Assembly (NCBI GenBank): GCA_964035545.1
Contig: OZ037771.1
Span: 3,235,628 to 3,299,627, forward strand
Source: Bugula neritina
Taxonomy: Eukaryota > Animalia > Bryozoa
Length of the DNA: 64,000 bases
Direction: 5' to 3'
Numbering within the stretch: the first letter of the stretch is position 1; every line of letters begins with the position of its first letter. The position numbers were made by a program, and so were the translations under genes. The notes under the pieces are model-generated. The model was not told where the DNA came from, did not search any database, and saw only the letters and a list, made by a program, of their open reading frames with translations. Below are positions 37,626 through 55,021 of this stretch, one piece after another.

Positions 37626-38960
37626 ATGAACTGTTTACTTCTCATCACTGCAGCTGGTAAACTACTTTTATTCTAATAAATTAATATTTCTGGTCACTTT
37701 TTAAAAGCTTTAGGTTGTATCAAGTTTTGTAACTTGGTCTGTTATTGTAACATATTATATTAAAAGTAATAAAAAAAACTACAGACCAGTAATATAGTGA
37801 TGAATGTTTGGAGAAAATATGTTTAAACATGTCTAGCAGAGCCTTAACTTTTTATCTGAATTTTTATTATTTTACACAAAGACTATATAAGAATAGTTTT
37901 TATTTGAAAAATGAAAGTGTTCTTTTAAAATTGCAGGTCTGTTTATTGGCCAGAGTTTAGCCAAAGACTGTAACCTCATCTGTGCAGCTGTGTATGACCC
38001 AGTTTGTGGATCTGATGGCAATACTTACTGTGAGTATATGACAAACACAGTATAAGTATTGTTGACAAGAAATTGTACGTGTGTACAAAAAATAATAATT
38101 AACTCACCAAAACCCACAATATATTTGACTAGCATTTTGCCTCCAAGTCAATTTAGTAAATTGTTATTACCAGCATTCTAGACCCTGTGTATGAAAAAAC
38201 TTATCTCAAATTATTTTATCGAAATATTTTAAAAGCAAGTAATTTTCAATCAGTTTTCAAGATATATTATAGTTCTTAAAATGTCAAAATTTGCAACAAA
38301 GTTACTTGAACAAACCAACACTTCTAAGTATAAAGTTATATAGAAAGAAATATTGATCTTTTAGCAAACCAGTGTGTTCTGGGAGGAGCTACTTGTAAAG
38401 ACAGCAGCGTCACCCTGGCATATAAAGGTGCTTGTAGGAAACAACCAGCCAAAGATTGTCCTCAAGTATGTTTTGCTCTGTACTCACCTGTCTGTGGAAG
38501 TGATGGAAAAATATACGGTAAATTAAAACCATATTTTTACCATTTTATGTTTTTCTTGAAGCACTCAACTTTCAACAACTGTCTTTAAAATATTCTGCTA
38601 CATCCCATTTTAAATAATAGACATTTTTTGGTAGAATATTTATTTCTCAAAGTCATTTTAAGATACTAAGTTTAATGAATTTATCCAGCAGCAAAAGTAT
38701 GTAAGCTGAGTGCGGTTTTCTTTGTAAGATACTATCATAGAAGTTACTTACTCTTATAGGCAACAGATGCCAGATGAGTGTGGCTAGCTGTAACAGTGGT
38801 AAGGAAATAACTGCCACCAAGTTAAGCAGATGTTCTTCAAGTTCTAACATTGCGACTCGATCAGTTAAGAAATCTTGTCCTACGATCTGTACTGCTAACT
38901 ACACACCAGTTTGTGGCAGCAACGGGAAGACTTACAGTAAGTCTGTAGTAACTTACCTCT

Positions 38961-39029
<69 letters not shown>

Positions 39030-39195
39030 CTAAAAATTGCTCAATAAATAATTTTCTTTATGCAACATCAATCATCCCTTTATTATCAAACTTTACTTGC
39101 ATTCTTGATATTTTCCAGGTAACGCATGCCATCTTATCGTGCATAACTGTCTTGGCAAAAAGAAAGTGACCATCAAGTCAAGAGGAAGATGTTAA
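37626..39195 (+). CDS. Secreted Kazal-type serine protease inhibitor 1 (3 Kazal domains)
   Basis: Exons 37626-37656, 37937-38029, 38365-38517, 38760-38936, 39119-39195. Signal MNCLLLITAAGLFIGQSLA; CxxxCxxxYxPVCGSDGxTYxNxC motifs; ends SRGRC-stop. Confidence 0.92.
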
Positions 39196-40200
39196 TTCAA
39201 CGTAGTTTCTACAGGACCTTCTCGTTGGATGAGACCAAAGTCACAAGAAAAAAATACTTCAGTTATCACAAATTTGACTAGCTTATGAAATAAATGTCAT
39301 GAAGGAAAATAAAACAAATATTCTTAATATAATATTATAATGTGTTTTTTCAATGTGTGTAATGTGCTATTACAGAGTACTCACAACAACCTGCAGTCTG
39401 CTGTCATATTAGATACACTCATCAGGGAGTGTCATGTCAATAAGTCATAGTGTAAGTTTATAATGTCTAGTTACCAGCCAACTAATCTTCAAGAAAACAG
39501 AATATCTTTACAGCTCTCATAGCTGCAGAGCTATACGTATTACCTAATAGAATTCACACAGGCTTTTTCTAACTTGAAATGAATGCATAATAAAAAAATA
39601 TGCACCTATATAAAAAGAAATACTTTGGACATGTAGAACCAACCAAGTTTACATATTCTATTTTCTTTATTTGGCACAATTATATTTCTATTACTGAATA
39701 ACTCAATTGAAAATTTTATTAGTCTATCAACTAACTTACGTCAAGCTAAGCATCTGGTGGAACTCACATAATAGCAGTGGTGGATTCAATTTCAACCCTT
39801 TTTCCAACATTCCTATCAAACTTACTCTAAAACTTATTGTAGATTACAATATAAAGACAAGTTGAGTTTAAATTTATGATAATCAGTTGGTATATTATTT
39901 CAATTATATTCAATATATTTCCTACAGCATCCTAGTGTTGAACACCCCCCCCCCCACCCTACTCTCTCATCCTCTGTCTTTTTTGCTTACTTTCCACTTT
40001 CCATAAATTGCATGCTAGACAATATTATATTCAACTTTTAGTCTTTTAATTATTTTAATCTTTTCAAGAAAAAGAAATTGTGTCAACTACTATTTTATAA
40101 GTTATCTCACCCCCTTTCTTTCCACCCCTGTTACTTACCCGTCATACTTGTAAAGAGGAAACAGCTAAACACTTGACATCTGACTCTCAACAGATACACA

Positions 40201-42552
40201 ATGAACTGTTTACTCTTCATCACTGCAACTGGTAAACTACTTCTATTCTAATAAACTATTAACCACCATTTTCTTTTGGAAAAGCTTTAAGTTGTATCAA
40301 CTTTTGTAGTTTAGCTTAAATTGTCATTACAGCCTACCATGTTAAAATAATAATATTAAAAAAACTACAGAGCAGCAATAGTGATGTATATTTTGAAAAA
40401 AACTTTCAAACATGTCTTTTAACAAAAATCTTAACAGGTTCTTTAATTATTTTTGTCTCAAACGTTTACTATTCTACAGAAAAGTTATATAAGAATATGC
40501 TTGCAGTCTATGTTCTCCAAATGATAGGGGTTCTTTGAATATTTCCAGGTCTGTTTATTGGCCAGAGTTTAGCCAAAGACTGTAACCTTATCTGTGCAGC
40601 TGTGTATGACCCAGTATGTGGATCTGATGGCAAGACTTACTGTGAGTATATAACATTATATAGATAACAACTATATATAATATAGATGACAACTATATAT
40701 AACATAGATAACAAACACAGTATAAGTATAGGTATTAAGCATAGGTATTGTGGCCAACAAGTATATAAATGTTTAAAAAATTAAAATAACTCCAGACTCT
40801 GTATAGTGTAAACAAACACATCGCAAACATTTTAACCAATATATTTTAAAGGCTAACAATTATCTTTTATCAGTTTTCAATATATATTATAGTTTTTAAA
40901 ATGTCAAAATTTGCAATAAAATTATCTGGACAAATCGACATTTTCAAATATTAAGGTGTACAAAAATAAATGTTAATCTCTTAGCTAACCAGTGTGCTCT
41001 TAGAGGAGCTACTTGTGAAGACAGCAGTATTACACTGGCATATGAAGGTGTCTGTAGGAAACAACCAGCCAAAGATTGTCCTCAAGCATGTTTTGATGTG
41101 TACACACCTGTCTGTGGAAGTGACGGGAAAACATATTGTAAGTGAGCATTATATTCTACTTTCACTAGAGTTTCTAAAAGTATCATTAATTTGAAAAAGT
41201 TAATTTTATGTGTGTCAGTGTTTTTCAAAGATCTTCAGCAAAATTATCAGCAATGGAATTGCCTGAACAAATTAACACTTTCAAATATGAAGCTATATAG
41301 AAATAAATTTTATCTTTTAGCTAACCAGTGTTACCTGGAAGTAGCTACTTGTAAAGACAGCAGTATCACGCTGACACATCAAGGTGCCTGTCGCAAACAA
41401 CCAGCCAAAGATTGTCCACAGGGATGTTTTGCTCTATACGCACCTGTCTGTGGAAGTGACGGAAAAATATACAGTAAGTTAGAATCATATTTTTATCATT
41501 TTATGTTTTTCTTGAAATATTCAATTTTATAAAAACTGTCATAAATGGAGTAGTCAGTCTAGATGTTAGAGTCTTGGCTTAGTAAACCCGAAGTCATGGG
41601 TTAGGATCCCAGTAAAGACTAGTGGTATTGTTTATAGGGAGAGCATCCAGTCATAATTGCTGTTATGCCACATAGATGAATAAGTTCTTAGTTCGCTTTA
41701 ACAACATTCTTTTCATCAGTGGGGGTGGATTCTTACAGAGGTAGTGACTATAAACTTTCGTGAATTTTTGTCTTAAAAATCTTCTTTATCGAAGTTAAAT
41801 TAATAATTATCTTTTGGCAAAATATATCTAGTAATGTCAAAGCCATTTTCTTCCAAAAAGTTGCATAAATTTATCCAACTATACACAGACTTTATTCAAC
41901 TACATATGAATACATTTTTTTATAAAATCATAGAAGTTACTTACTCTAGGCAACAGATGCCAGATGAGTGTGGCTAGCTGTAACAGTGGTAAGGAAATAA
42001 CTGCCACCAAGTTTAGCAGATGTTCTTCAAGTTCTAACATTGTGACTCGATCAGTTAAGAAATCTTGTCCCACGATCTGTACTGCTAACTACACACCAGT
42101 TTGTGGCAGCAACGGGAAGACTTACAGTAAGTCTGTAGTAACTTACTTCTACAATATATTAGTATCTGTCAAGTTGTACAGCATTTTATATAAGCTAAGA
42201 GTTCTGATAAGTGGGACTTTCTAAGATTGAGAATTAAACTTCAATATAATATATAGAATATTTAAATGTGAACAACTACACGTACTGCATAAATTTTCTA
42301 CATAAAGTGTTATATAGTACTGCTCTTCACATTGTCCCGAAGTAACTTGGTAAACAGTCATTGTTTATCACTAGCATTTTTTTGCTTTAAACTTCCTCAA
42401 TAAATATTTTGTTTTATGCAACATCAACTGTCCTTTTGTTATTAAACCTTTACTTGCATTCTTAATGTTTTCCAGGCAACTCATGTAAGCTGAGAGTATA
42501 TAACTGTCGTAACAACAAGAAGGTGTCCATCAAATCAAAAGGAAGATGTTAA
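40201..42552 (+). CDS. Secreted Kazal-type inhibitor 2 (4 Kazal domains)
   Basis: Exons 40201-40231, 40549-40641, 40985-41137, 41321-41473, 41950-42126, 42476-42552; same signal peptide and Kazal motifs as gene 1. Confidence 0.92.
41545..41770 (+). mobile_element. Degenerate tRNA-headed SINE-like insertion in a Kazal gene 2 intron
   Basis: A-box-like TAGTCAGTCTAGATGTTAG and B-box-like GGGTTAGGATCCC; the segment is absent from the paralogous intron of gene 1. Boundaries approximate. Confidence 0.45.
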
Positions 42553-43427
42553 TTCCACAGTTCCTACTGGACTGTTCCTAGGCCAGACCAAAGAAACAAG
42601 AAGAAAAATGCTTCAAATGTCAAAAAATTTGGCTAGTATATAAAATAAATGTATGACCAAGAATAAAACAAATATTCAAATATATTATTCAATGTGTGTA
42701 GTGTAATATAATAACTCAGAGTACTCACAACAACCTGTAGCCTGATGTCATATTAGATACACTCATCAGAGAGTGTCATGTCAATAAGTTAAAGCTTTAA
42801 AATAGTTTCAAGAATTGTATGTAAACCAAGGAACAAAATAGCTATCATATCATAGCTGTAGAGCTATACGTAATGCCTAATAGAACTGATACAGGCTTCT
42901 TTCATCTTGAAATGAATGCACAATTAATAAGGAAATAGCACCTATAAAAAAGAAATAATTTGGACATGTAGAACCAACCAAGTTTACATATTCCAACTTT
43001 TTCTATTTGACACATCCTATTCTTACTGAATAACTCCGTTGACAAAATGTAGTAATCTATCAATCAACTTGCGTCATACTAAACATCTGACGGAACTCAC
43101 ATGTAACAGTGGCGGATTCAACTATGCACCTTTTTACTTCAACCCTTCATTTAACATTTCTATAAAAATTAAATGCCATCAAAACTAGAATGCAACGGCA
43201 TATTGAGTTTAATTTTATGATAATGAAATGCATGGCGTATAATTGTGACATGTAACAAAATTTCTACAGCATCTCAGCATAAACCTCCTTACCCCCTTCC
43301 CTCACCCCCTCCCCTTACCCCCTCCCCCTCACTCACTCTTTCATCCTCTTGCTCTTTTGTTTACTTTCACTTTTCAATTATTTATCAGCTATAAAACATT
43401 AGGTGTGTGAAATTCAACAGATACACA

Positions 43428-44799: not shown

Positions 44800-45797
44800 C
44801 TGGAAACATACTGCGTAAAATAAGGTAATCGGGCTATGATTGGAAAATATTCTATTAAACTTTATAGCATGTAATTACCTTTAAAAACCTTACAGCCAGT
44901 TCATTGAACTTCATTTTTTTCTTTTTAATCACAAGAAATAAATACTAAAGTAATAATTTATATTCTAATACATAGATAAATATTAATGTTCTAGAATTAT
45001 CAGACAATACTGATCTTATGAATTTACAGATAGCCTATGCTCTCCAAAGGGCTTGCAGCTGTCATATGGGGGGACAGGTGACATCAAACCCAAGTTGATT
45101 GAGATAAGAGTTCCCACAGACTTTGTTGCACCCTGTACTTTGTAATAAAATACTTTCTGGTGTACTTTATTTGTAAAATATACTCGGTGTGCAATATCTT
45201 ATGAACAAATAATTACATCTACAAAATTGAGTTGTAATATATTTCTTTAACGTAGAATAATTGGTGCATCATGCTCATGCTTCAAATGCCAACAAAGCAA
45301 CACTTGGTTTAATATTGTATAATACGCTCTGAAGATATGATTTGATATAACTTAAAGCCAACTTACACCATCTTTTTGGAACAACTTTTAAAAATTGAAA
45401 ATAAAAACATCTCATTCATCGTAGTTGTGCTCTCTCTGCATACAAAAGAAGGCAACTACTGAATCTACTTGAGAACAGTTATAAATATCTGTCTTCTACA
45501 TGTTGTTTAATGTAACGGGCAACTACGTTTTGCAGTATGCAAAAATTTTGGCCTGCTGCATGTTAATTTGAAAGTTATTGAAATTTTTGTAGACCCTCAT
45601 CATTGAATAAAGCTGAAAAAGTTTATGTAAGAAAAAATTTAGCTCAAATAGCGTAGAACAGTGGTAGATTAATGTAGTTACTTTATCATTTACCAAGAGA
45701 CATAATATAACTGTATATTTCTATTGCTACATACATGATGTCTAACTAACTCATAGCAAGTAAATATGAAATAGTCCTTGTATTATAGCATACAGAG

Positions 45798-46659
45798 TAT
45801 AGAATGACACTCTTTGCTATGACTCTTGCTTTAGAGTGACACTCTAGCTTATACAGCCTGACTAGGAATAGGGAGGGTTTTAGACGTGATCAGAGTTTAT
45901 TTGAGTCACCAATGTTGATCAAATACTGACCAAATGCTGACCAAACACTGACCGTAAAAACTAAAATAATAATGATACAACATAAGGCATAAGGCAAACA
46001 AAATGTACGTAATATAATAAGTATGTTTGTAAAAGCACTAGCAATGTATATCATAAATTGTAGATAGCAGCATGAAATAATGATTCAACATAGCATGCAA
46101 CTACAGCCCATATTATTAAAAACTTTATAACATAAAAATGTAATAACGATATATAATTGTAAATAGATGTTCATTACCTCTTTTCTCTCTCTCCTAGTCT
46201 ACTGTTATGTTAATGCTGTGGCTTTGCACAGTCTTTCAAATAATGCTACTCTTTGGTAGTCTTACATAAACTTAATGCTGTCCAAACTGACAGCATGACT
46301 CTAACAATATTGCAACTACTAAAAATGGTTTTGTCTTATATACTAATCCATTTGATAAACATTATTGTGTTGTAAGAGGTATGATTTTACAATTTACTAT
46401 TTCGGGGTAGGATCTTACTGTTTCAAGAAGTGGGCTGAAGTAAACAAGCATGTGTGACATCACAGCTGATGCAAGCATAACTGCTGACTATGAATCATTC
46501 TACATGCGTAGCTACTGTTTTGGGGTAGTAATTAAAGAAGCATTAGGTAGACTACTAGCAGCTAGTGGTTAGGCTAATTTGAGGTTGATGACATTGTGAT
46601 TGTGTGTGATTGTACTACAAGTTATAATATCTGTAAACATCCTATTTCGTAACATTACA
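45798..46659 (-). repeat. BEL 3' LTR (862 bp, TG...TA)
   Basis: Matches 50357-51218; preceded on the minus strand by the polypurine tract AAAGGGGGGAG (46670-46660). Confidence 0.95.
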
Positions 46660-46779
46660 CTCCCCCCTTTAATTTCTCTCTATTCACTTAGAGGGAATTA
46701 ACAATTATATTATTATGCATTTAAAATACTAAGCTAAAATACTAATATAGGTATGCAAGCAAAGGTTATGGGGTAAATA

Positions 46780-47046
46780 GGTAAATTAATTTTTATGGAT
46801 AGGCCTATCTAAGTATGTGGGTGGAGCTAGTCTCACATCTTTACTGTTCAACTCTGTAGTTGCTAGTTGTACTTTTACCTTACGAATTAAGTCATCTCAG
46901 TTCCATGTGTTTCTATCTCACTTACACAATTGTCTTTACTTAGCCTGTAATATTCATCTAAAAATGACTCTTTTTGTACCCACTGCATTACAAGATGTTT
47001 AGCATCTGTCAAGTCAATAATTGTGAGTCTGGGAGTTATGCTACCT
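46780..47046 (-). pseudogene. Fragmentary remnants of BEL pol (post-RNaseH segment and extreme C-terminus)
   Basis: Short pieces in different frames: LTIIDLTDAKHLVMQWVQKESF and DDLIRKVKVQL..TYLDRPIHK, typical of BEL pol ends. Confidence 0.7.
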
Positions 47047-49788
47047 TTATGCTTTACTAATCTTTTTCTTTTTGGGGTGATACACGCCAAAGTGGGGAAT
47101 GTACCACTGATGGTTGCTTGCCTCACAAGTTGTAGGTACCAATTCTGCATCGCCATTGTTTGTTATGTCTGTCATGAATGCCACGTAATCTGTTCCATAT
47201 TTCTGGTCTTTAAGGAATTTAGATTTGAGGGTATCAAGTCTGTGCACAGCTAATTGTCTATTGCCTGGTAATTGTGGCTTAGCATTTTTAAACGGCAGTG
47301 GCATGCTGTAATAATTGCCTTCTCTTTGTTTAATATTGTTGCGCATGTTATCTAAAAACTTGGCATCTTCCTGTGACATTTTATGAGTACCAATGTACTT
47401 TGTGTCAGTATAATCTTGCTGTAGGACATTCAAGATATCTGAGCTCAAGTTCTGCTCATGAGCCATAGCCCTATTGCATGTGGGAAATGAGTTTGTTTCA
47501 TGCTTACCACTATTGCCTACAATACACCATCCTAGAGGTGTTCTCAGAGCAAAGGGATCATTGATTGCAGGGCCTATTTTAGTTTCAAGTGGCACTAAAG
47601 CTCTGGAGTTGTCATACCCTATAAGCATTCCTATCTCTATATCTAAACCTTGTGGTATTTCACCTGCAATGCATTTAAGGTGTGGCCATCTAGTGGCAAT
47701 TTCTGGTGTGGGTATGTGCTGCTTGTTAATTGGAATGCTGTCCCTACTGTAAGTCTTTCCTACTTGTATCTGCTCATGCATGTTCAGTCCTCTAATGGTC
47801 AAGTTATTGTACACCTTACACTTCATTTCCAAGTTGTCCGCTGTCATTGTTGTTAGTTTAAGAGAAACTGGTTTGCTTGTAGCTGTTTGTAGCTTACTAA
47901 CAACTTGGTTAGTTACAAATGTGGTATCTGACATGCTATCTAAGAGTGCATAAGTTAGCACTTCCTCATTAGGGTTATCTACAGTTGCTAGGTATATAGG
48001 CACAACCATTGAGCACAAGCCATTTGTTTTAGCCACTGTATTGTTGCTGTTAGCTGTTACTTGCTCTGGGTTGTTGCTACTTGCTACTTCATTTACCTGC
48101 ACTGTTTCTACTTTGGTATTGCTGTTGTTAGCTTGTGTAGCTGGCTGATTGCTTCTATGTGTTACAGTAGGATGCCTTTTTTGGCATATTTTACAAGTGG
48201 CTCTATTTCTGCATTCTTTTGTCATGTGACCTATTCTCAAGCAACCAAAGCATAATCTTTTACTAGTAATGAACTGTTGTTTTTGGTCAACTGGTATGCT
48301 AGCCAGTTTTCTACACTCATGTGTGCTATGATTACTGTAATTGCAGTAGAGGCATAGTTTAGCTTTGTGGTTTTCTGTACTTTTAACATCAGGAGAATGC
48401 TTTTCTATGCTAGTAGCAAAGCTAATGCCATTGTTGTGCTTTTGAGGCTTATGTGAGTCTATAACCCTTGAACCTGACAAAGATGAGGTAATTGGATCGT
48501 TTAGGATTTCTGCTTCTGTTTGCACAAACTTTACAAACTGACTAAAACTGGGGTAACTCCTGTGATTTTTCCTATGTGTGGTTACCTCCCGCTTCCATCT
48601 GTTTATCATGTTATCTGGCAGCTTGGAAATGAGCTCAAGATTCTTTTCGCAATCATTTAAAATTTCCAACTTTTTAATATCTTTTGCTGCTATTTCACAA
48701 TGTGTGAGGAAGTCAGAAAATGATTGTATCTGCTTATGTTCATGTGGTTTCATTTTGGGCCAAGCATTAATTTTCTTTCGAAATTCGTTAGCAACTGTGA
48801 ATTCTGACCCAAATCTTTCTTTCAAAATTATTCTGGCCTTTTGGTATGCTGCTAGTGTATGTAAACTGCATAGGCCACTAATTGCTTCTCTAGCAGGTCC
48901 ATCAACATGCTGTTTCAAGACATACATTTTACCATCATCACCTATCATTTTATCCTTGATGTAACTCTCTATGGCATATTCCCAATCTATAAAGTCTAAG
49001 GGATTTCCCCTAAATATTGGTGGCTTCGGCACATTGTTGGCTTGTATTGCTTTTGTTAAGCATGTGGCCAGGTATTCATTACTGCATGTAGAATGCTGTG
49101 ATTCATTGTTTTGCATGCTGCCTATTTGCTGTGGTTGGTTGCTTTGCAAAACTTCTACTGGCCTACTAAAAATAACTTCACTATTGCTTTCCTGATTCAC
49201 TATTGGTTGGCAATTATCTAAATACTCTGCTAGCTCATCTCTAACATCTACATCATGTTCCTCTATTATTTCCTGCCTTATTCTCAGTTGTTTCTGTTTT
49301 TCTAACAGCTTACTTTTACTTAGTTCCAACTGGACATTGGCTAACTGCCTTTTTAGCTCAGCCTGTCTTTGCATGGCTTCCATTTCACTTTCTAATTGTG
49401 CAACTTGCAATTTTGTCTTGGCTGAGATGAATGAGCTTGCTTTTGATGTGTGTTTACTGCTAGCATGTACTGAATGGCTTTCGCCCTTACATTGTTCATG
49501 TATACTGTTAATTTGCTGTGTTAAGTCCTCAAGGTGAGGATGACTTGGAGCTAATGACTTTAGAATTGCTAAGTCAGCATCTGCATCTAACATAATTCGT
49601 TGCATGTCATCCCAAAATTCATTATCATGATTGTCTGTTGCTGCATGCCTACTTCTAAACCTTTTAATTGCACTTGTGATAGATTTAAACCTTTTTTCTA
49701 CCTCTAATTGTTTTCCCTTTGTAGATAGGGTTTTGACTCGGCTGCTAATCCTAATGCTATTACTACATGTGGATGTGTCATCATTCAT
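47047..49788 (-). CDS. BEL/Pao Gag + aspartic protease + truncated RT start (913 aa)
   Basis: Coiled coil; PPIFRGNPLDFIDWE (DUF1759-type gag); knuckles CLYC..H..C, CFGCLRIGHMTKEC, CKICQKRH..H; protease YALLDSMSDTTF; PFALRTPLGW; RT start WYIPHFGVYHPKK, then an abrupt end. Confidence 0.92.
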   Translation of the reverse strand: MNDDTSTCSNSIRISSRVKTLSTKGKQLEVEKRFKSITSAIKRFRSRHAATDNHDNEFWDDMQRIMLDADADLAILKSLAPSHPHLEDLTQQINSIHEQCKGESHSVHASSKHTSKASSFISAKTKLQVAQLESEMEAMQRQAELKRQLANVQLELSKSKLLEKQKQLRIRQEIIEEHDVDVRDELAEYLDNCQPIVNQESNSEVIFSRPVEVLQSNQPQQIGSMQNNESQHSTCSNEYLATCLTKAIQANNVPKPPIFRGNPLDFIDWEYAIESYIKDKMIGDDGKMYVLKQHVDGPAREAISGLCSLHTLAAYQKARIILKERFGSEFTVANEFRKKINAWPKMKPHEHKQIQSFSDFLTHCEIAAKDIKKLEILNDCEKNLELISKLPDNMINRWKREVTTHRKNHRSYPSFSQFVKFVQTEAEILNDPITSSLSGSRVIDSHKPQKHNNGISFATSIEKHSPDVKSTENHKAKLCLYCNYSNHSTHECRKLASIPVDQKQQFITSKRLCFGCLRIGHMTKECRNRATCKICQKRHPTVTHRSNQPATQANNSNTKVETVQVNEVASSNNPEQVTANSNNTVAKTNGLCSMVVPIYLATVDNPNEEVLTYALLDSMSDTTFVTNQVVSKLQTATSKPVSLKLTTMTADNLEMKCKVYNNLTIRGLNMHEQIQVGKTYSRDSIPINKQHIPTPEIATRWPHLKCIAGEIPQGLDIEIGMLIGYDNSRALVPLETKIGPAINDPFALRTPLGWCIVGNSGKHETNSFPTCNRAMAHEQNLSSDILNVLQQDYTDTKYIGTHKMSQEDAKFLDNMRNNIKQREGNYYSMPLPFKNAKPQLPGNRQLAVHRLDTLKSKFLKDQKYGTDYVAFMTDITNNGDAELVPTTCEASNHQWYIPHFGVYHPKKKKISKA

Positions 49789-50356
49789 TGTTGCTGTGTT
49801 AGTAATAGAGACAGTTAGTGATAAGCATGCATTTACTTACTTACAGCTATTTTATAACCTAAATTCAATAGGAAAACTAGTTTGGACTGGTTTGTCAAGA
49901 ATTTCACAACAGCTACTGCAAACAAACAGCTGATGCCAGCACAGGGATTGCACCCAACTGCCCAATCAGAAACAGGGAGATCCTAATTAATTTTATGGGG
50001 CTTTGACACAATGTCTATCAAATGGAGTTTCTATAATTACAATACTTCAAAAAATAAATCTGCATGCAAGCCTAACTATTCTAATAACTTTCCATTCAAC
50101 TATTTCCTTTATAATTATGTCACTTATATGTGAAGGTGAGGGTTATATGGTAATCTCTCACCAATCTGCTGATTCCAGGTCACCTTTGTATGTAGTTGAG
50201 AGTAGTTGAGAATAATCCTGATAAATGTTAGTAATGTTTATATAGTTGAGGTGGGTAGAAGTGAGGTTCTCCTTGTGGTTGTCTTACGTTTGTCGACTTC
50301 TTTTGTTGGACTTGAGAAAGAGTTTTTACTCCCGGACTTTGAGAAAGAGTTTTTAC

Positions 50357-51218
50357 TATAGAATGACACTCTTTGCTATGACTCTTGCTTTAGAGTGACA
50401 CTCTAGCTTATACAGCCTGACTAGGAATAGGGAGGGTTTTAGACGTGATCAGAGTTTATTTGAGTCACCAATGTTGATCAAATACTGACCAAATGCTGAC
50501 CAAACACTGACCGTAAAAACTAAAATAATAATGATACAACATAAGGCATAAGGCAAACAAAATGTACGTAATATAATAAGTATGTTTGTAAAAGCACTAG
50601 CAATGTATATCATAAATTGTAGATAGCAGCATGAAATAATGATTCAACATAGCATGCAACTACAGCCCATATTATTAAAAACTTTATAACATAAAAATGT
50701 AATAACGATATATAATTGTAAATAGATGTTCATTACCTCTTTTCTCTCTCTCCTAGTCTACTGTTATGTTAATGCTGTGGCTTTGCACAGTCTTTCAAAT
50801 AATGCTACTCTTTGGTAGTCTTACATAAACTTAATGCTGTCCAAACTGACAGCATGACTCTAACAATATTGCAACTACTAAAAATGGTTTTGTCTTATAT
50901 ACTAATCCATTTGATAAACATTATTGTGTTGTAAGAGGTATGATTTTACAATTTACTATTTCGGGGTAGGATCTTACTGTTTCAAGAAGTGGGCTGAAGT
51001 AAACAAGCATGTGTGACATCACAGCTGATGCAAGCATAACTGCTGACTATGAATCATTCTACATGCGTAGCTACTGTTTTGGGGTAGTAATTAAAGAAGC
51101 ATTAGGTAGACTACTAGCAGCTAGTGGTTAGGCTAATTTGAGGTTGATGACATTGTGATTGTGTGTGATTGTACTACAAGTTATAATATCTGTAAACATC
51201 CTATTTCGTAACATTACA
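50357..51218 (-). repeat. BEL 5' LTR (862 bp) containing a putative 217-nt GT-AG intron (50736-50520) and an AATAAA
   Basis: Matches 45798-46659. Minus strand reads GAGAAAAGAG|GTAATG ... ATTATTTTAG|TTTTTACGG, with AATAAA ~60 nt further downstream. Confidence 0.9.
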
Positions 51219-51410
51219 CAGAGTTATATTTCACTTTTAGTATTCCAAAATAATAACTTTTATTATCATGTAAGAAAAAAATTTGTAAGTGTTAACTAGG
51301 ATATTGTGCATTATCTCACCCCCTTCTTCTCCACCTCTGGTTACTTACTTGTCATACTTGTAAAGAGGAAACAGCTACACACTTGACATCTGGCTCTCAA
51401 AAGATACACA

Positions 51411-53025
51411 ATGAACTGTTTACTTCTCATCACTGCAGCTGGTGAGCTACTTCTATCCTAATAAACTAATGTCTATTGTTATTTCATAAAAGCTTTAAGT
51501 TATCAAAGTTTTTGATTTAGCTTATCATTTTACCAAAATAAAATAATAATATAAAAACTATAAAGCAACTATATAGCGATGCATATTTTGAAAAAAAAAT
51601 TCAAATATGTCTTTCAACAAAAAATTAACATCTGCTTTCGTTTCTTTTTCACTCAAATTTTTATTATTTCACAGTAAAGTTATCTACTAATAGTTTAGTT
51701 ATTGTTCTAGAAATAATATTAAATCTTTGAAAATTTGCAGGTCTGTTTATTGGCCAGAGTTTAGCCAAAGACTGTAACCCCATCTGTCCAGCTGTATATA
51801 ACCCAGTTTGTGGATCTGATGGCAAGACTTACTGTGAGTATATGACAAACACAGTATAAGTATTGTTGACAAGAAATTGTACGTGTGTTCAAAAAATAAT
51901 AATTAACTCACCAAAACCCACAATATATTTGACTAGCATTTTGCCTCCAAGTCAGTTTAGTAAAAAAAAATTCATATATCATGATTTTAAAAGTGTCTTC
52001 AAATATTAAATTATATAAGAATAAGTGTTTACTTTAAAGCAGTAATTGAGAACCATACTAATTGCTATTGGCATTTTCTGTGTTAATTTTTAAAGAACTA
52101 AATTTCAAAACCACTGTATTAAAAATCTTCTTTGATATTGAACTTCAAACAATATATAATATGATTCAGTAAACTAGTAATTTTGAAGTTATTTTAAAAC
52201 AATAAAGTCAATAAAAATCTATTCAACTATAAAAATACTAAAAATATTTACGGTATCTTCTTTGTAAGATATTGTCACAAATTCCCTCCCTTCTAGCGAA
52301 CAAGTGCCAGATGGGCGTGGCTAGCTGTAACAGTGGCAAGGAGATATCCCTAACCAAATATGGCCGCTGCTCTTCACATTCTAACATTGTCACTCGATCG
52401 GCTAAAAGAAACTGTCTAATGCGCTGTCTTGCTGTCTACTTACCAGTCTGTGGCAGCGACGGAAGAACTTACAGTAAGTCTGTAGGAACTTACCTCTACA
52501 ATATATTAGTATCTGTCAAATTGTGCAGCATTTCATATAAGCTTAGGGTTTTTATAAGTGGGTTTTTTAAGATAAAAATGAGTTGTAATAAAATATTATA
52601 TGTGGGATATTTATATGTAAACAATTGCACATGTTTCATGTCTTTTCTATATGTAAGTTGACTTATATTTACTTGATACAATAAGCTTTACATACAACTG
52701 TGCAGAAGTATATTAGTGAATAGCAATTGTTCATCACTAGCAAACTTTTTGCTTTAAAACTCTTCAATAAGTATTGAAAAAATAATTTTGCCCCTACTGG
52801 GAATCAAACCTGGCTTGCAAGCAAGTGTGCTAACCATTACAACACGGGAACCACTGGGTAAACTCATTACTACAAGTATTTTATTTTATGCCACATCAAT
52901 TGTGCTTTTATTAAATTAAACATTTACCTATGTTTTTAAACTTTTCAGGTAACTCTTGTTCACTGAGAGGATATAACTGCCGTAACAACAAGAAGGTGTC
53001 CATGAAATCAAAAAGAAGATGTTAA
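51411..53025 (+). CDS. Secreted Kazal-type inhibitor 4 (2 Kazal domains)
   Basis: Exons 51411-51441, 51741-51833, 52297-52473, 52949-53025. [20 protein letters not shown] and CLAVYLPVCGSDGRTYSNSC. Confidence 0.9.
52776..52873 (-). mobile_element. 98-bp tRNA-derived insertion with 7-bp target-site duplication
   Basis: Minus strand GGTTCCCGTGTTGTAATGGTTAGCAC..GGTTTGATTCCCAG (A and B boxes), then a T-run. Flanked by AAGTATT (52769-52775, 52874-52880); absent from the paralogous intron of gene 2. Confidence 0.6.
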
Positions 53026-55021
53026 TTCTGCAGTTCCTACTGGACCGTTCCTAGGTCAGGACAAAGTCACAAGAAAAACAAATACTTTAATCGTCATAAA
53101 TTTGACTAGTGTATGACTTGAATGTATGATTGAACATGTTTGAACATGAAAAATAAATTAATTCCATGTTACATAAATGTGCTAAAATTTACAAAAACTT
53201 CGACAGCCCCATAATTCTTTTTCTTGACATGAAATCATACTTTGTGGTTTACTTTGGTAAACTATTATGTAATGTTTTAATTCAATATCAAGCTTCATAT
53301 AATTCAAGTTGGCCATCTGCCATCTGCCATCTAATGATGTTCTGCATGAAACAATGATACGGAAGTAGATGGGTCTTCAACATTTCCTGTTTTGCCCCCA
53401 TATTGAGTTTGTCAACCAGCTTATTGTGATAAAATGACTCAAACTATTGTTGGTACAAAGTTGAAGCATTTTATTGGTTAACATACATTACCTTGTATGG
53501 TCATTATATGTAGCAGCTGACAGATGTCAACTGCAGGTCAAGCCAATTGGAAATAGACTTAGTTAGCTATTTCAAAAAGACTAGTACATCTCAGCTGTAC
53601 AGTTTTACCAAACATGTTGAAAAAAAGGCTTTATATACTATTACATATTATAAAACGCAAACACTCAAGTAATAAGTCAAGGTATATAAAATATCAATAT
53701 AAATGTTCTACATTACTTGTGCAGTAGCTACTTTACAAAGTTTTGCAGCAGTGAGCATATGACATCCAATCAAAAAGAGTCATTTCCAGTTTATTTGTTA
53801 CATCAACAAAGTATCTCGTAGAGCACTTTATTTGTAAAATATAAAAGGTGATTATTGAAAAATATGTCATCCTTTGATGCTCTACGGTAATCAATGTGTG
53901 GGCATCTCATGGCCAAATAATAAAATTGTTTTGTATTTTCGCATCACATTTCTTTAGCATAGAATGATTGGTATATAATGCCTAAATGCAATAGAAAATA
54001 CTTGGTTATACATCATCATCACATTTGAGTTGTCCGACCATAAATCTTTTTGTAACACTATAAATTTAAAGGTTTACGGCATTAAAAATCTTACTAATAA
54101 AGACTTGGTAGTAAATCAATAAATAAACTTATAAAATTGATTGCACCGTTTTAAAAAGTCATCTACAAAATTAAGTTATAGCCTCCTTGTCAAATTTACC
54201 ATTTCTAGATGTCAAAATAAACATCACACCATAACTGTCAAATCATTACAATCCTAGGAAGTAATAATCTAATAAAATATGTGTAGTCACTGAACGGATT
54301 ATCAACTTTATCTAGATATATATGATTTTATGATTATTCCACATATATTATCATATAGGTTTGTTCTTAGCCTATATTATTTAAAACAATGGTATGCTGT
54401 CAGGTAGTTTGTAGATTGCATTAAAGAAAAGTAGGAGTCGTTTATTTGAACAGATTTCAATGTATTATATTTCAGAAATTTGAGACAAGTAAAATTAAAG
54501 CACACAACAGCTGTTTTGAATAAAATAAACAATATTACATTAGTTTTACAAAACCTTGCTTATAGGTGTGACAACTTCAGATTAGTTGTTTACTAATAAT
54601 TAAATTTACAAGCACTGTTGGTTGGTGCCTCAGCATACACCAATTAGGAATTAGAAAGCTTTTAGGCACATTAAACCCAGAACAATTATACTGATTAGGA
54701 TTTCAAGCGTTATCTACCACCCCACCAGCTACATCTGGCACTAGTCTCACACTTAAGGGGCGGATAGAGATCATAAAAATACTTCCATATTTAAACAAAC
54801 GTTAAGAAAAACGCTAAACATTTTTGCAGTTTTAAAGTACACTTTAACATTTTCAAGCAACAAATTTACTGACTTAATAAAACATTTATTAACAGGCAAA
54901 ACTAACTATTTAGTCACTCACAACTTTGGTATTATTTCCACTCAATCAGATTACAAATTCCAGCGTAATTTAAAACTTACCTCAAGCTATTTCTAAAGTT
55001 GTCTTTGTGTGGACAAGAAGC

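Follow-up and report, generated by a model that had tools for sequence, protein, structure and literature searches.

Organisation of the element

The window analysed here, a stretch of 64,000 nucleotides from contig OZ037771.1 of the bryozoan Bugula neritina, contains on its minus strand a retrotransposon bounded by two long terminal repeats (LTRs), the features of which are listed in Table 1. An earlier sequence-only reading of the window had assigned it to the BEL/Pao superfamily, and all sequences and coordinates given in that reading were correct on the minus strand. The assignment is borne out by the protein content: the only long open reading frame of the element encodes a gag with DUF1759, and the polyprotein of a full-length member of the family (L071, 1893 amino acids from the first ATG) matches all four of the Pfam families Peptidase_A17, Integrase_H2C2, DUF5641 and DUF1759. 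Of these, the window frame retains only DUF1759, as the pol part has been deleted, and its stop is located at the deletion, just past the first RT motif. Both the 5-bp target-site duplication and the polypurine tract that are hallmarks of BEL/Pao elements are present. The LTR has a G+C content of 33% and the termini TGT...ATA in the window family, while the LTRs of its relatives (see below) end in ...ACA.

The 216-Mb genome contains at least five members of the window family of about 8.1 kb in size, with an open frame of 1909 amino acids. Apart from the loss of two internal segments (about 1.5 and 1.1 kb), the window copy shares 97.5% identity with the full-length L071, and the deletion derivative is present in 8 copies with open frames of 929-931 amino acids. 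The window element is therefore a non-autonomous deletion derivative of the ~8.1-kb BEL/Pao family, and one that was recently moved in trans. No record was found for the window family in an exact-protein look-up.

Table 1. Features of the BEL/Pao element and its LTRs, in window coordinates.
Feature	Position	Strand	Remarks
Target-site duplication CTCTG, upstream copy	51219..51223	-	
Whole BEL/Pao element, 5421 bp	45798..51218	-	LTR pair and target-site duplication
5' LTR, 862 bp, TGTAATG...TTCTATA	50357..51218	-	100% identical to 3' LTR
Likely TATA box GTATATAAG	50894..50902	-	Read from sequence
Exon-1 tail GACTAGGAGAGAGAG	50744..50758	-	Complementary to U5 50435-50419
Last 10 nt of LTR exon 1 (GAGAAAAGAG)	50737..50746	-	Complementary to PBS positions 8-16, one bulged A
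Donor GAGAAAAGAG/GTAATG	50737/50736	-	
LTR intron, 217 nt, GTAATG...TTATTATTTTAG, 25% G+C	50520..50736	-	Exactly absent from four genomic LTR copies
Acceptor TTATTATTTTAG/TTTTTAC	50520/50519	-	
E2a, first 7 nt of exon 2, TTTTTAC	50513..50519	-	Proposed primer 3' end is the C at 50513
Three GGTCAG-type 11-nt repeats	50480..50512	-	Directly after proposed cleavage site
Polyadenylation signal AATAAA	50455..50460	-	Starts 53 nt past E2a
U5 segment CCTCCCTATTCCTAGTC	50419..50435	-	Predicted to pair with exon-1 tail; helix is an alternative to junction:PBS helix
PBS position GTAAAAACTCTTTCTC	50341..50356	-	Begins at first base after LTR
Second copy of 26-27-nt PBS unit	50303..50329	-	16-mer GTAAAAACTCTTTCTC again at 50329-50314
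Open reading frame, 913 aa	47047..49788	-	Gag (DUF1759), zinc knuckles, protease region, very start of RT
Polypurine tract AAAGGGGGGAG	46660..46670	-	Directly before 3' LTR
3' LTR, 862 bp	45798..46659	-	
Target-site duplication CTCTG, downstream copy	45793..45797	-	

An intron in the LTR

A search of the genome with the LTR yielded some copies in which query bases 13-494 are joined to bases 710-876 with an overlap of 2 nt. These copies read ...GAGAAAAGAG/TTTTTACGG... across the joint and lack precisely the 217 nt from GT to AG. With a natural intron-less copy as the query, we identified four intron-less LTRs as compared to at least 33 that retain the intron. Two of the four are solo LTRs, one located on C1 (target-site duplication GTTGT) and the other, which belongs to an 83%-identical subfamily, on C9 (TTAGT), and the remaining two are the 5' LTRs of complete insertions on C4 (ACTAT) and C5 (CCTTT). 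The natural intron-less copies also served as the spliced reference, and the exon ends were compared piece by piece. Diverged LTR subfamilies of this genome (L066, L067 and L068, 84-87% identity) are represented by solo LTRs and so provide no information about the primer-binding site (PBS).

Exact loss of a GT...AG segment from retro-copies is the usual signature in DNA of splicing followed by reverse transcription. The segment has the GT...AG borders, the donor consensus and the polypyrimidine tract of a spliceosomal intron, and the donor and acceptor that the sequence-only reading had placed within the LTR thus delimit a real intron, excised exactly in four genomic LTR copies from two subfamilies. 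These copies represent indirect but strong evidence that the LTR intron is spliced and that the spliced RNA gets reverse-transcribed.

The motif GTATATAAG is also found in a Watersipora LTR, about 165 nt upstream of the donor, and similar TATA motifs are present in L075 and L076. If it acts as a TATA box in the window LTR, transcription would start about 30 nt downstream of it and exon 1 would be about 130 nt long. On the other side of the intron, the stretch of GGTCAG repeats is the part of the LTR that varies most in indels among the copies. This hot spot after E2a may be caused by misaligned first-strand transfer, and tandem repeats are unstable anyway; the hot-spot count was given little weight, since the end anchor also caught a similar site nearby.

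Complementarity between the splice junction and the post-LTR sequence

We found no TGG-type PBS within the first ~100 nt after the 5' LTR and no tRNA genes in the window using ARAGORN, which agrees with the original observation that a TGG/tRNA PBS is missing downstream of the 5' LTR. The second copy of the 16-mer at the PBS position is part of a tandem unit of 26-27 nt that is present in one, two, three or at least four copies across members of the family.

The 862-nt LTR was searched for matches to the reverse complement of the bases that follow it, with the 3' end of this complement as the anchor. The single best match in the window LTR was 9 nt in length (AG plus TTTTTAC) and located at the acceptor, with a runner-up of 6 nt. 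There are 41 GT sites upstream of the acceptor, and the donor described above was alone in lengthening the match (by 6 nt) while the other 40 added nothing. Joining of the two exon ends yielded 13 perfect pairs with the PBS, or 16 with one bulged A, as opposed to 9 nt in the unspliced sequence, and the complementarity stopped at the LTR edge, so that the values previously given for the junction were reproduced by our recalculation. For the spliced junction of a natural copy and its PBS the estimated duplex energy was -18.2 kcal/mol, versus -7.3 kcal/mol for the 9 bp of the unspliced sequence.

The 16-mer complement of the PBS was found in the 216-Mb genome only in copies of the element and at one isolated site on C2. 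Allowing for at most one mismatch added a 525-bp coding-like tandem repeat on C108 (one mismatch), and neither the C2 site nor the C108 repeat had a match in Rfam. Comparison of the PBS with host RNAs, a check put forward together with the sequence-only reading, thereby gave no candidate for a host RNA primer (16-mer search of the genome, Rfam, and tRNA genes in the window).

Comparison with related families

Relatives of the window family were collected by a protein search with the RT region, for which the identity to the window family ranged from 47 to 55%. The DNA around 11 relatives was extracted, and 9 of these yielded an LTR along with the sequence following it. They comprise two families of the bryozoan Watersipora subatra, three contigs from marine metagenomes, one element each from the hemichordate Glandiceps talaboti and the sea urchin Strongylocentrotus purpuratus, and two copies of one teleost fish family, one of which is from Pseudorasbora parva. 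Including the window family, the dataset consisted of ten pairs of LTR and post-LTR sequences from nine distinct BEL/Pao families, the two fish copies being one family. For a tenth relative, located on a Logan contig, the PBS alone was visible (GTAAAAACTCTTCTG).

The first 9 nt after the 5' LTR were the exact complement of AG plus E2a at the 3' splice site of the LTR in all ten pairs. The best 3'-anchored match was exactly 9 nt in each of the ten LTRs and the next best was at most 7 nt. E2a was located 67-156 nt before the end of the LTR, following a pyrimidine-rich site ending in ...AG, and a polyadenylation signal was present about 20-65 nt past E2a in nearly all of the compared families. 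The LTRs thus share a common order of features, namely a TATA-like motif, exon 1 ending in ...AG, a GT donor, an A/T-rich intron of about 100-530 nt, a pyrimidine-rich ...AG, E2a, a G, AATAAA, the LTR end and the complementary post-LTR sequence, with the introns outside the window family being predictions from the consensus. Apart from this shared plan, the LTRs of different families could not be aligned.

Five combinations of E2a and PBS start were observed: TTTTTAC with GTAAAAA in the bryozoan-type clade, GTTTCAC with GTGAAAC in the second Watersipora family, CTCTTAC with GTAAGAG in fish, ATCTTAC with GTAAGAT in the hemichordate and TTTTCAC with GTGAAAA in the sea urchin. Variation was seen at three of the seven E2a positions, at one of them through all four bases, and the Watson-Crick compensation was always full, which requires at least five compensated E2a/PBS changes on the polyprotein tree. 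The base after E2a was G and the last base of the LTR was A in all ten pairs; as these two cannot pair, the duplex comes to its end precisely at the edge of the LTR, where the 3' end of a minus-strand primer must be located. The conserved ...AC/G context at the proposed cut is the one sequence feature that bears on the putative RNase H cleavage.

The PBS was matched on the donor side of the intron as well. In every LTR, the GT site that lengthened the match most was the AG/GT donor, although tied with another GT in two of the LTRs, and the donors of the bryozoan-type families were positionally homologous (GGAGAG...AAG/GT). The perfect complementarity after joining was 13 nt in the window family, 12, 11 and 11 nt in three other pairs and 10 nt in the remaining six, as compared to 9 nt in all unjoined sequences. 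The exon base at position -3 was the complement of the PBS base in all ten pairs, the intron base at -3 in none of them, and the exon base switched between G and A together with the PBS in at least 2-3 independent co-changes on the tree. Covariation of the PBS with the predicted LTR splice junction in related BEL families, which had been suggested as a test of the sequence-only reading, was in this way observed in all ten pairs.

A second helix in the leader

Another complementarity was conserved among the LTRs, between the 20-35 nt of exon 1 that immediately precede its last ~6 nt and the 3' end of U5. It was present in all nine LTRs that were analysed, and the U5 partner ended 1-5 nt before the end of the LTR in eight of these. 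A helix of exon 1 with U5 needs both segments on one RNA. This speaks for transcription from a point upstream of the donor and against a transcript starting at E2a. The helix also crosses the junction:PBS helix, so that the two cannot coexist in cis; the leader would have to change between two conformations or, alternatively, a second RNA would have to provide the primer.

In the centroid fold of a natural intron-less leader, the junction was paired with the PBS. When the unspliced leader of the window element was folded, the minimum-energy structure placed both of the exon ends on the PBS, with the intron forming a side domain. As 9 bp are present without splicing and as the unspliced leader can adopt such a fold, the sequence alone cannot prove that splicing precedes priming.

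Insertions with unequal LTRs

In each of the two complete insertions on C4 and C5, which are flanked by matching target duplications, the intron is missing from the 5' LTR but present in the 3' LTR. The U3 and U5 segments are nearly identical within each pair of LTRs, and the two U3 segments of the C5 insertion are each other's nearest relatives. The R regions differ on both sides of the junction in the length of the (GA)n tract and in the make-up of the GGTCAG units, and the C5 pair has an additional 10-nt indel in R. Such unequal LTRs are not explained by canonical reverse transcription and strand transfer or by self-priming in cis, nor are they predicted by the main model presented below. 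They may have been caused by a spliced leader RNA that served as the plus-strand primer, by spliced cDNA acting in gene conversion or by a second jump between different molecules.

A model for primer formation and its alternatives

The retrotransposons Tf1, Tf2, Maggy, Skippy and sushi-ichi are self-priming Ty3/gypsy chromoviruses (the Tf1/sushi group), described in work by Levin and by Poulter, which have no tRNA PBS and in which the bases that directly follow the 5' LTR can pair with a short segment of R from the same element. Tf1 is reported, from work by Levin, to self-prime with 11 nt, the first of the transcript, and to obtain the primer by an RNase H cut. The complementarity across families, the covariation and the stop at the LTR edge indicate that self-priming of this kind, in one form or another, is well supported and very probable for the BEL/Pao elements studied here. 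The elements from the sea urchin, the acorn worm and fish show the same layout and compensating changes, and so these probably self-prime too.

A primer that spans the exon junction is in our opinion the best reading of the data, albeit unproven, and it is plausible that splicing itself makes the primer. Specifically, we consider it somewhat more probable than the opposite that the window element self-primes without a tRNA, with RNA from its own LTR, consisting of the end of exon 1 joined to E2a, supplying the minus-strand primer. The LTR exon 1 end and E2a would pair with the sequence that begins at the first base after the 5' LTR, and once the 217-nt intron has been removed the duplex would run without interruption for 13 bp, or for 16 bp if one bulge is allowed. 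The RNA would then be cleaved after ...UUUUUAC, in analogy to RNase H cleavage in Tf1, and the resulting 3'-OH would be extended into U5 by reverse transcriptase. The product would be a primer RNA ending in ...GAGUUUUUAC, joined to the complement of U5 on the minus-strand strong-stop DNA, which would cover U5 and the stretch back to the cut and end just after E2a. The segment of 40-90 nt that separates E2a from the poly(A) site would act as the working R for the first strand transfer, and exon 1, the intron and E2a would be regenerated from the 3' LTR copy. Intron-less LTRs would arise whenever the 3' copy of the intron is spliced.

In the cis form of this model the 5' intron has to be spliced and the 3' intron kept on the same RNA, which counts against it, and the caveat raised in the sequence-only reading that the 3' copy must stay unspliced is correct for this form. 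A trans form would remove the difficulty: a short spliced LTR transcript ending at the poly(A) site of the LTR itself would prime the unspliced genomic RNA, and a single RNA spliced at the 5' intron and unspliced at the 3' intron would not be needed. The insertions that lack the intron in the 5' LTR and have it in the 3' LTR would then be by-products, in which spliced RNA also primed the plus strand. Three additional observations count against the main model. In cis, the junction:PBS helix faces competition from the conserved helix of the exon-1 tail with U5, the match between junction and PBS is imperfect beyond 10-13 nt, and in the fish and hemichordate LTRs a TATA-like motif is not consistently found upstream of the predicted donor. 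The transcription start site and the cleavage are proposals, priming may occur in cis or through a separate short spliced LTR transcript, and splicing may be required for priming or just compatible with it.

Self-priming could also take place from unspliced RNA, either with the 9 nt of AG plus E2a alone or through a three-way junction with the intron looped out, in which case the intron would serve another purpose, such as expression, export or hiding of the 5' poly(A) signal. The 9-nt core is available without splicing in all ten pairs, both exon ends lie on the PBS in the minimum-energy fold of the unspliced leader, and most genomic copies keep the intron in both LTRs, so that unspliced RNA is certainly a template. 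Nevertheless, nine A/U-rich base pairs provide only -7.3 kcal/mol and Tf1 uses 11, while PBS position 10 tracks exon base -3 and never intron base -3 in the ten pairs. The constant distance of 7 nt between the intron and the primer end across all families, whose LTRs otherwise cannot be aligned, is also hard to explain if splicing plays no part in priming, and we regard this alternative as unlikely. It is improbable that priming follows the classical Tf1 scheme, with a genomic RNA that starts at or next to AG/TTTTTAC and a primer that is the 5' end of the transcript; under this scheme, what we have called exon 1 and intron would represent U3 and be spliced only within the 3' UTR or in read-through transcripts. 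Such a start would give R its usual size (~40-90 nt, from E2a to the poly(A) site), and one Watersipora LTR has a TATAAA 27 nt upstream of E2a. In the other families a TATA at -30 is not consistently present, and this position is occupied in all ten pairs by a 3' splice site with a polypyrimidine ...AG; the conserved GTATATAAG is located ~165 nt upstream of the donor. Moreover, the pairing of the exon-1 tail with the 3' end of U5 in nine of nine LTRs needs exon 1 on the same RNA as U5, and PBS positions 10-13 match exon 1.

A host RNA as the primer is a shade less probable still. The complement of the PBS within the LTR would in that case be a mimic or regulator that masks the PBS or controls splicing or 5' polyadenylation, and pairings of U5 with the leader around the PBS do occur in retroviral leaders. 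The fitting RNA would end in ...AGUUUUUAC, and in ...AGGUUUCAC in Watersipora. A tRNA-like primer is unlikely because Pol III would terminate at the run of five U, and the genome search revealed no other source of the 16-mer. The five E2a/PBS haplotypes are compensated. A single host, Watersipora, moreover harbours two families whose PBSs differ and in each case agree with the LTR of the family itself, which is a strong argument against a host RNA primer common to both. Finally, a coincidental match between A/T- and GA-rich sequences, which could be imagined given the G+C content of the LTR (33%) and the purine/pyrimidine runs in both the exon end and the PBS, was rejected by the comparative data from the ten pairs and has next to no probability: the best match is unique in ten LTRs, occurs at the same place and the same boundary, and has compensated changes.

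Relation to known priming systems

The elements described here resemble the Tf1/sushi group in having no tRNA PBS, a post-LTR complement of the element's own transcript that has been kept in evolution and a duplex that ends at the LTR edge and, by analogy, in that a cut at the duplex end would give the primer and the primer bases would be regenerated from the 3' copy of R. However, the window element belongs to BEL/Pao rather than Ty3/gypsy and would work like the group without being a member of it. Unlike the first 11 nt of the transcript used by Tf1, the complementary stretch is apparently located ~130 nt into the transcript; the upstream TATA motif, the splice signals and the exon-1:U5 helix are indirect evidence that points to an internal position. 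In the DNA of the window element, a spliceosomal intron furthermore interrupts the stretch 7 nt before the primer end, and the full complementarity (10-16 bp) exists in these BEL/Pao families only across the exon-exon junction.

With tRNA-primed LTR retrotransposons and retroviruses, the window element shares the LTR-PBS...PPT-LTR plan, the 5-bp target duplication and a U5/leader helix near the PBS, but it has neither a TGG...-type PBS nor a match to a tRNA 3' end, and the PBS covaries with its own LTR. A functional 5' splice site inside an LTR-derived leader is also known from HTLV-1/BLV and foamy viruses, which have a splice donor in R and an acceptor in the body of the genome. In the window element, by contrast, donor and acceptor are both located within R, so that the whole intron is duplicated in both LTRs, and the junction matches the PBS.

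The two main surveys of BEL/Pao elements never mention a PBS, tRNA or primer, and the start of reverse transcription in this superfamily appears to be undescribed. A literature search did not find BEL/Pao and self-priming together, in keeping with the sequence-only reading, for which no description of splice-coupled priming was known, but older papers on BEL-like elements (e.g. Frame et al. 2001) might mention priming.

Implications

Annotation tools that search for tRNA PBSs will miss or mis-score elements of this type, for which the rule of AG plus 7 nt matched by the PBS is a simple diagnostic. More tentatively, and with the balance tipped slightly towards doubt, a large BEL/Pao lineage in at least four animal phyla may make its primer by splicing of an LTR intron in the R region, which would bring two half-sites together as the primer, possibly on a short LTR transcript that acts in trans. 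If the trans-primer reading is true, RNA processing would decide which molecule is the primer and which is the genome. If the model as such is true, self-priming extends beyond one Ty3/gypsy clade to a second LTR superfamily that is present in many animals, a spliceosomal intron has been conserved inside the LTR because of where it cuts the primer sequence, and splicing is directly coupled to reverse transcription.

Primer-binding site and LTR variation

The primer-binding site (PBS) is located inside a tandem unit of 26-27 nt, GTAAAAACTCTTTCTCAA(A)GTCCGGGA, in the window element as well as in the copies L009, L013, L064 and L065. The number of units varies from 1 to at least 4 among family members, and in many copies the PBS units are followed by a degenerate extra unit, GTAACAGCTCCATCTCAAGTCC. 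The LTR part richest in indel variation among 26 aligned copies consists of three 11-nt GGTCAG-type repeats immediately 3' of the proposed cleavage site. The LTRs of the window family terminate in ...ATA, whereas all related families examined have the usual ...ACA. One full-length copy, L069, has an open frame of 1909 aa and a deletion of about 100 nt common to both LTRs (family LTR positions ~148-246), with a repeat of about 18 nt at its borders.

Features and copies (G000, B. neritina genome)
Feature	Position	Observation
PBS tandem units	window 50303-50356
GGTCAG-type repeats	window 50480-50512
LTR termini	window 50357-50359; 45798-45800
Exon-1 tail	window 50744-50758
U5 3' end	window 50419-50435
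Recurring segments	window 38000-42656; 51340-53129
L064	G000 C4:9437416-9442622	5' LTR without intron, 3' LTR with intron; matching intact target duplications
L065	G000 C5:13966583-13971865	5' LTR without intron, 3' LTR with intron; matching intact target duplications
L069	G000 C6:8537000-8546500
L061	G000 C108:5000-6400
L066	G000 C4:11717000-11726999

Neighbouring and other repeats

On the upstream flank of the BEL element, at higher coordinates, several segments of 110-300 nt recur 10-14 kb away with 64-98% identity; next to the insertion lies either a segmental duplication or a further repeat family. L066, a solo LTR from a subfamily with 87% identity, is present twice, 6.8 kb apart, and the flanks of the two are identical; it represents a local segmental duplication rather than an LTR pair. 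L061, which surfaced solely through its 1-mismatch copy of the 16-mer following the LTR, is a tandem repeat of ~525-530 bp with a protein-coding appearance, for which no Rfam match was found.

Unequal LTRs and a second helix

L064 and L065 are two independent insertions in which the 5' LTR is intron-less whereas the 3' LTR contains the intron. Within each pair the differences are concentrated in R near the junction, with U3 and U5 near-identical. Such discordant pairs are not expected from standard reverse transcription.

In 9 of the 9 LTRs analysed, the tail of exon 1 shows complementarity to the U5 3' end, equivalent sites being present in L072, L074, L075 and L077-L081 beside the window LTR. 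The 5' poly(A) signal lies between the two arms of this helix, which is mutually exclusive in cis with the pairing of the spliced junction to the PBS. The helix may act as a switch, or as a mask over the poly(A) site.
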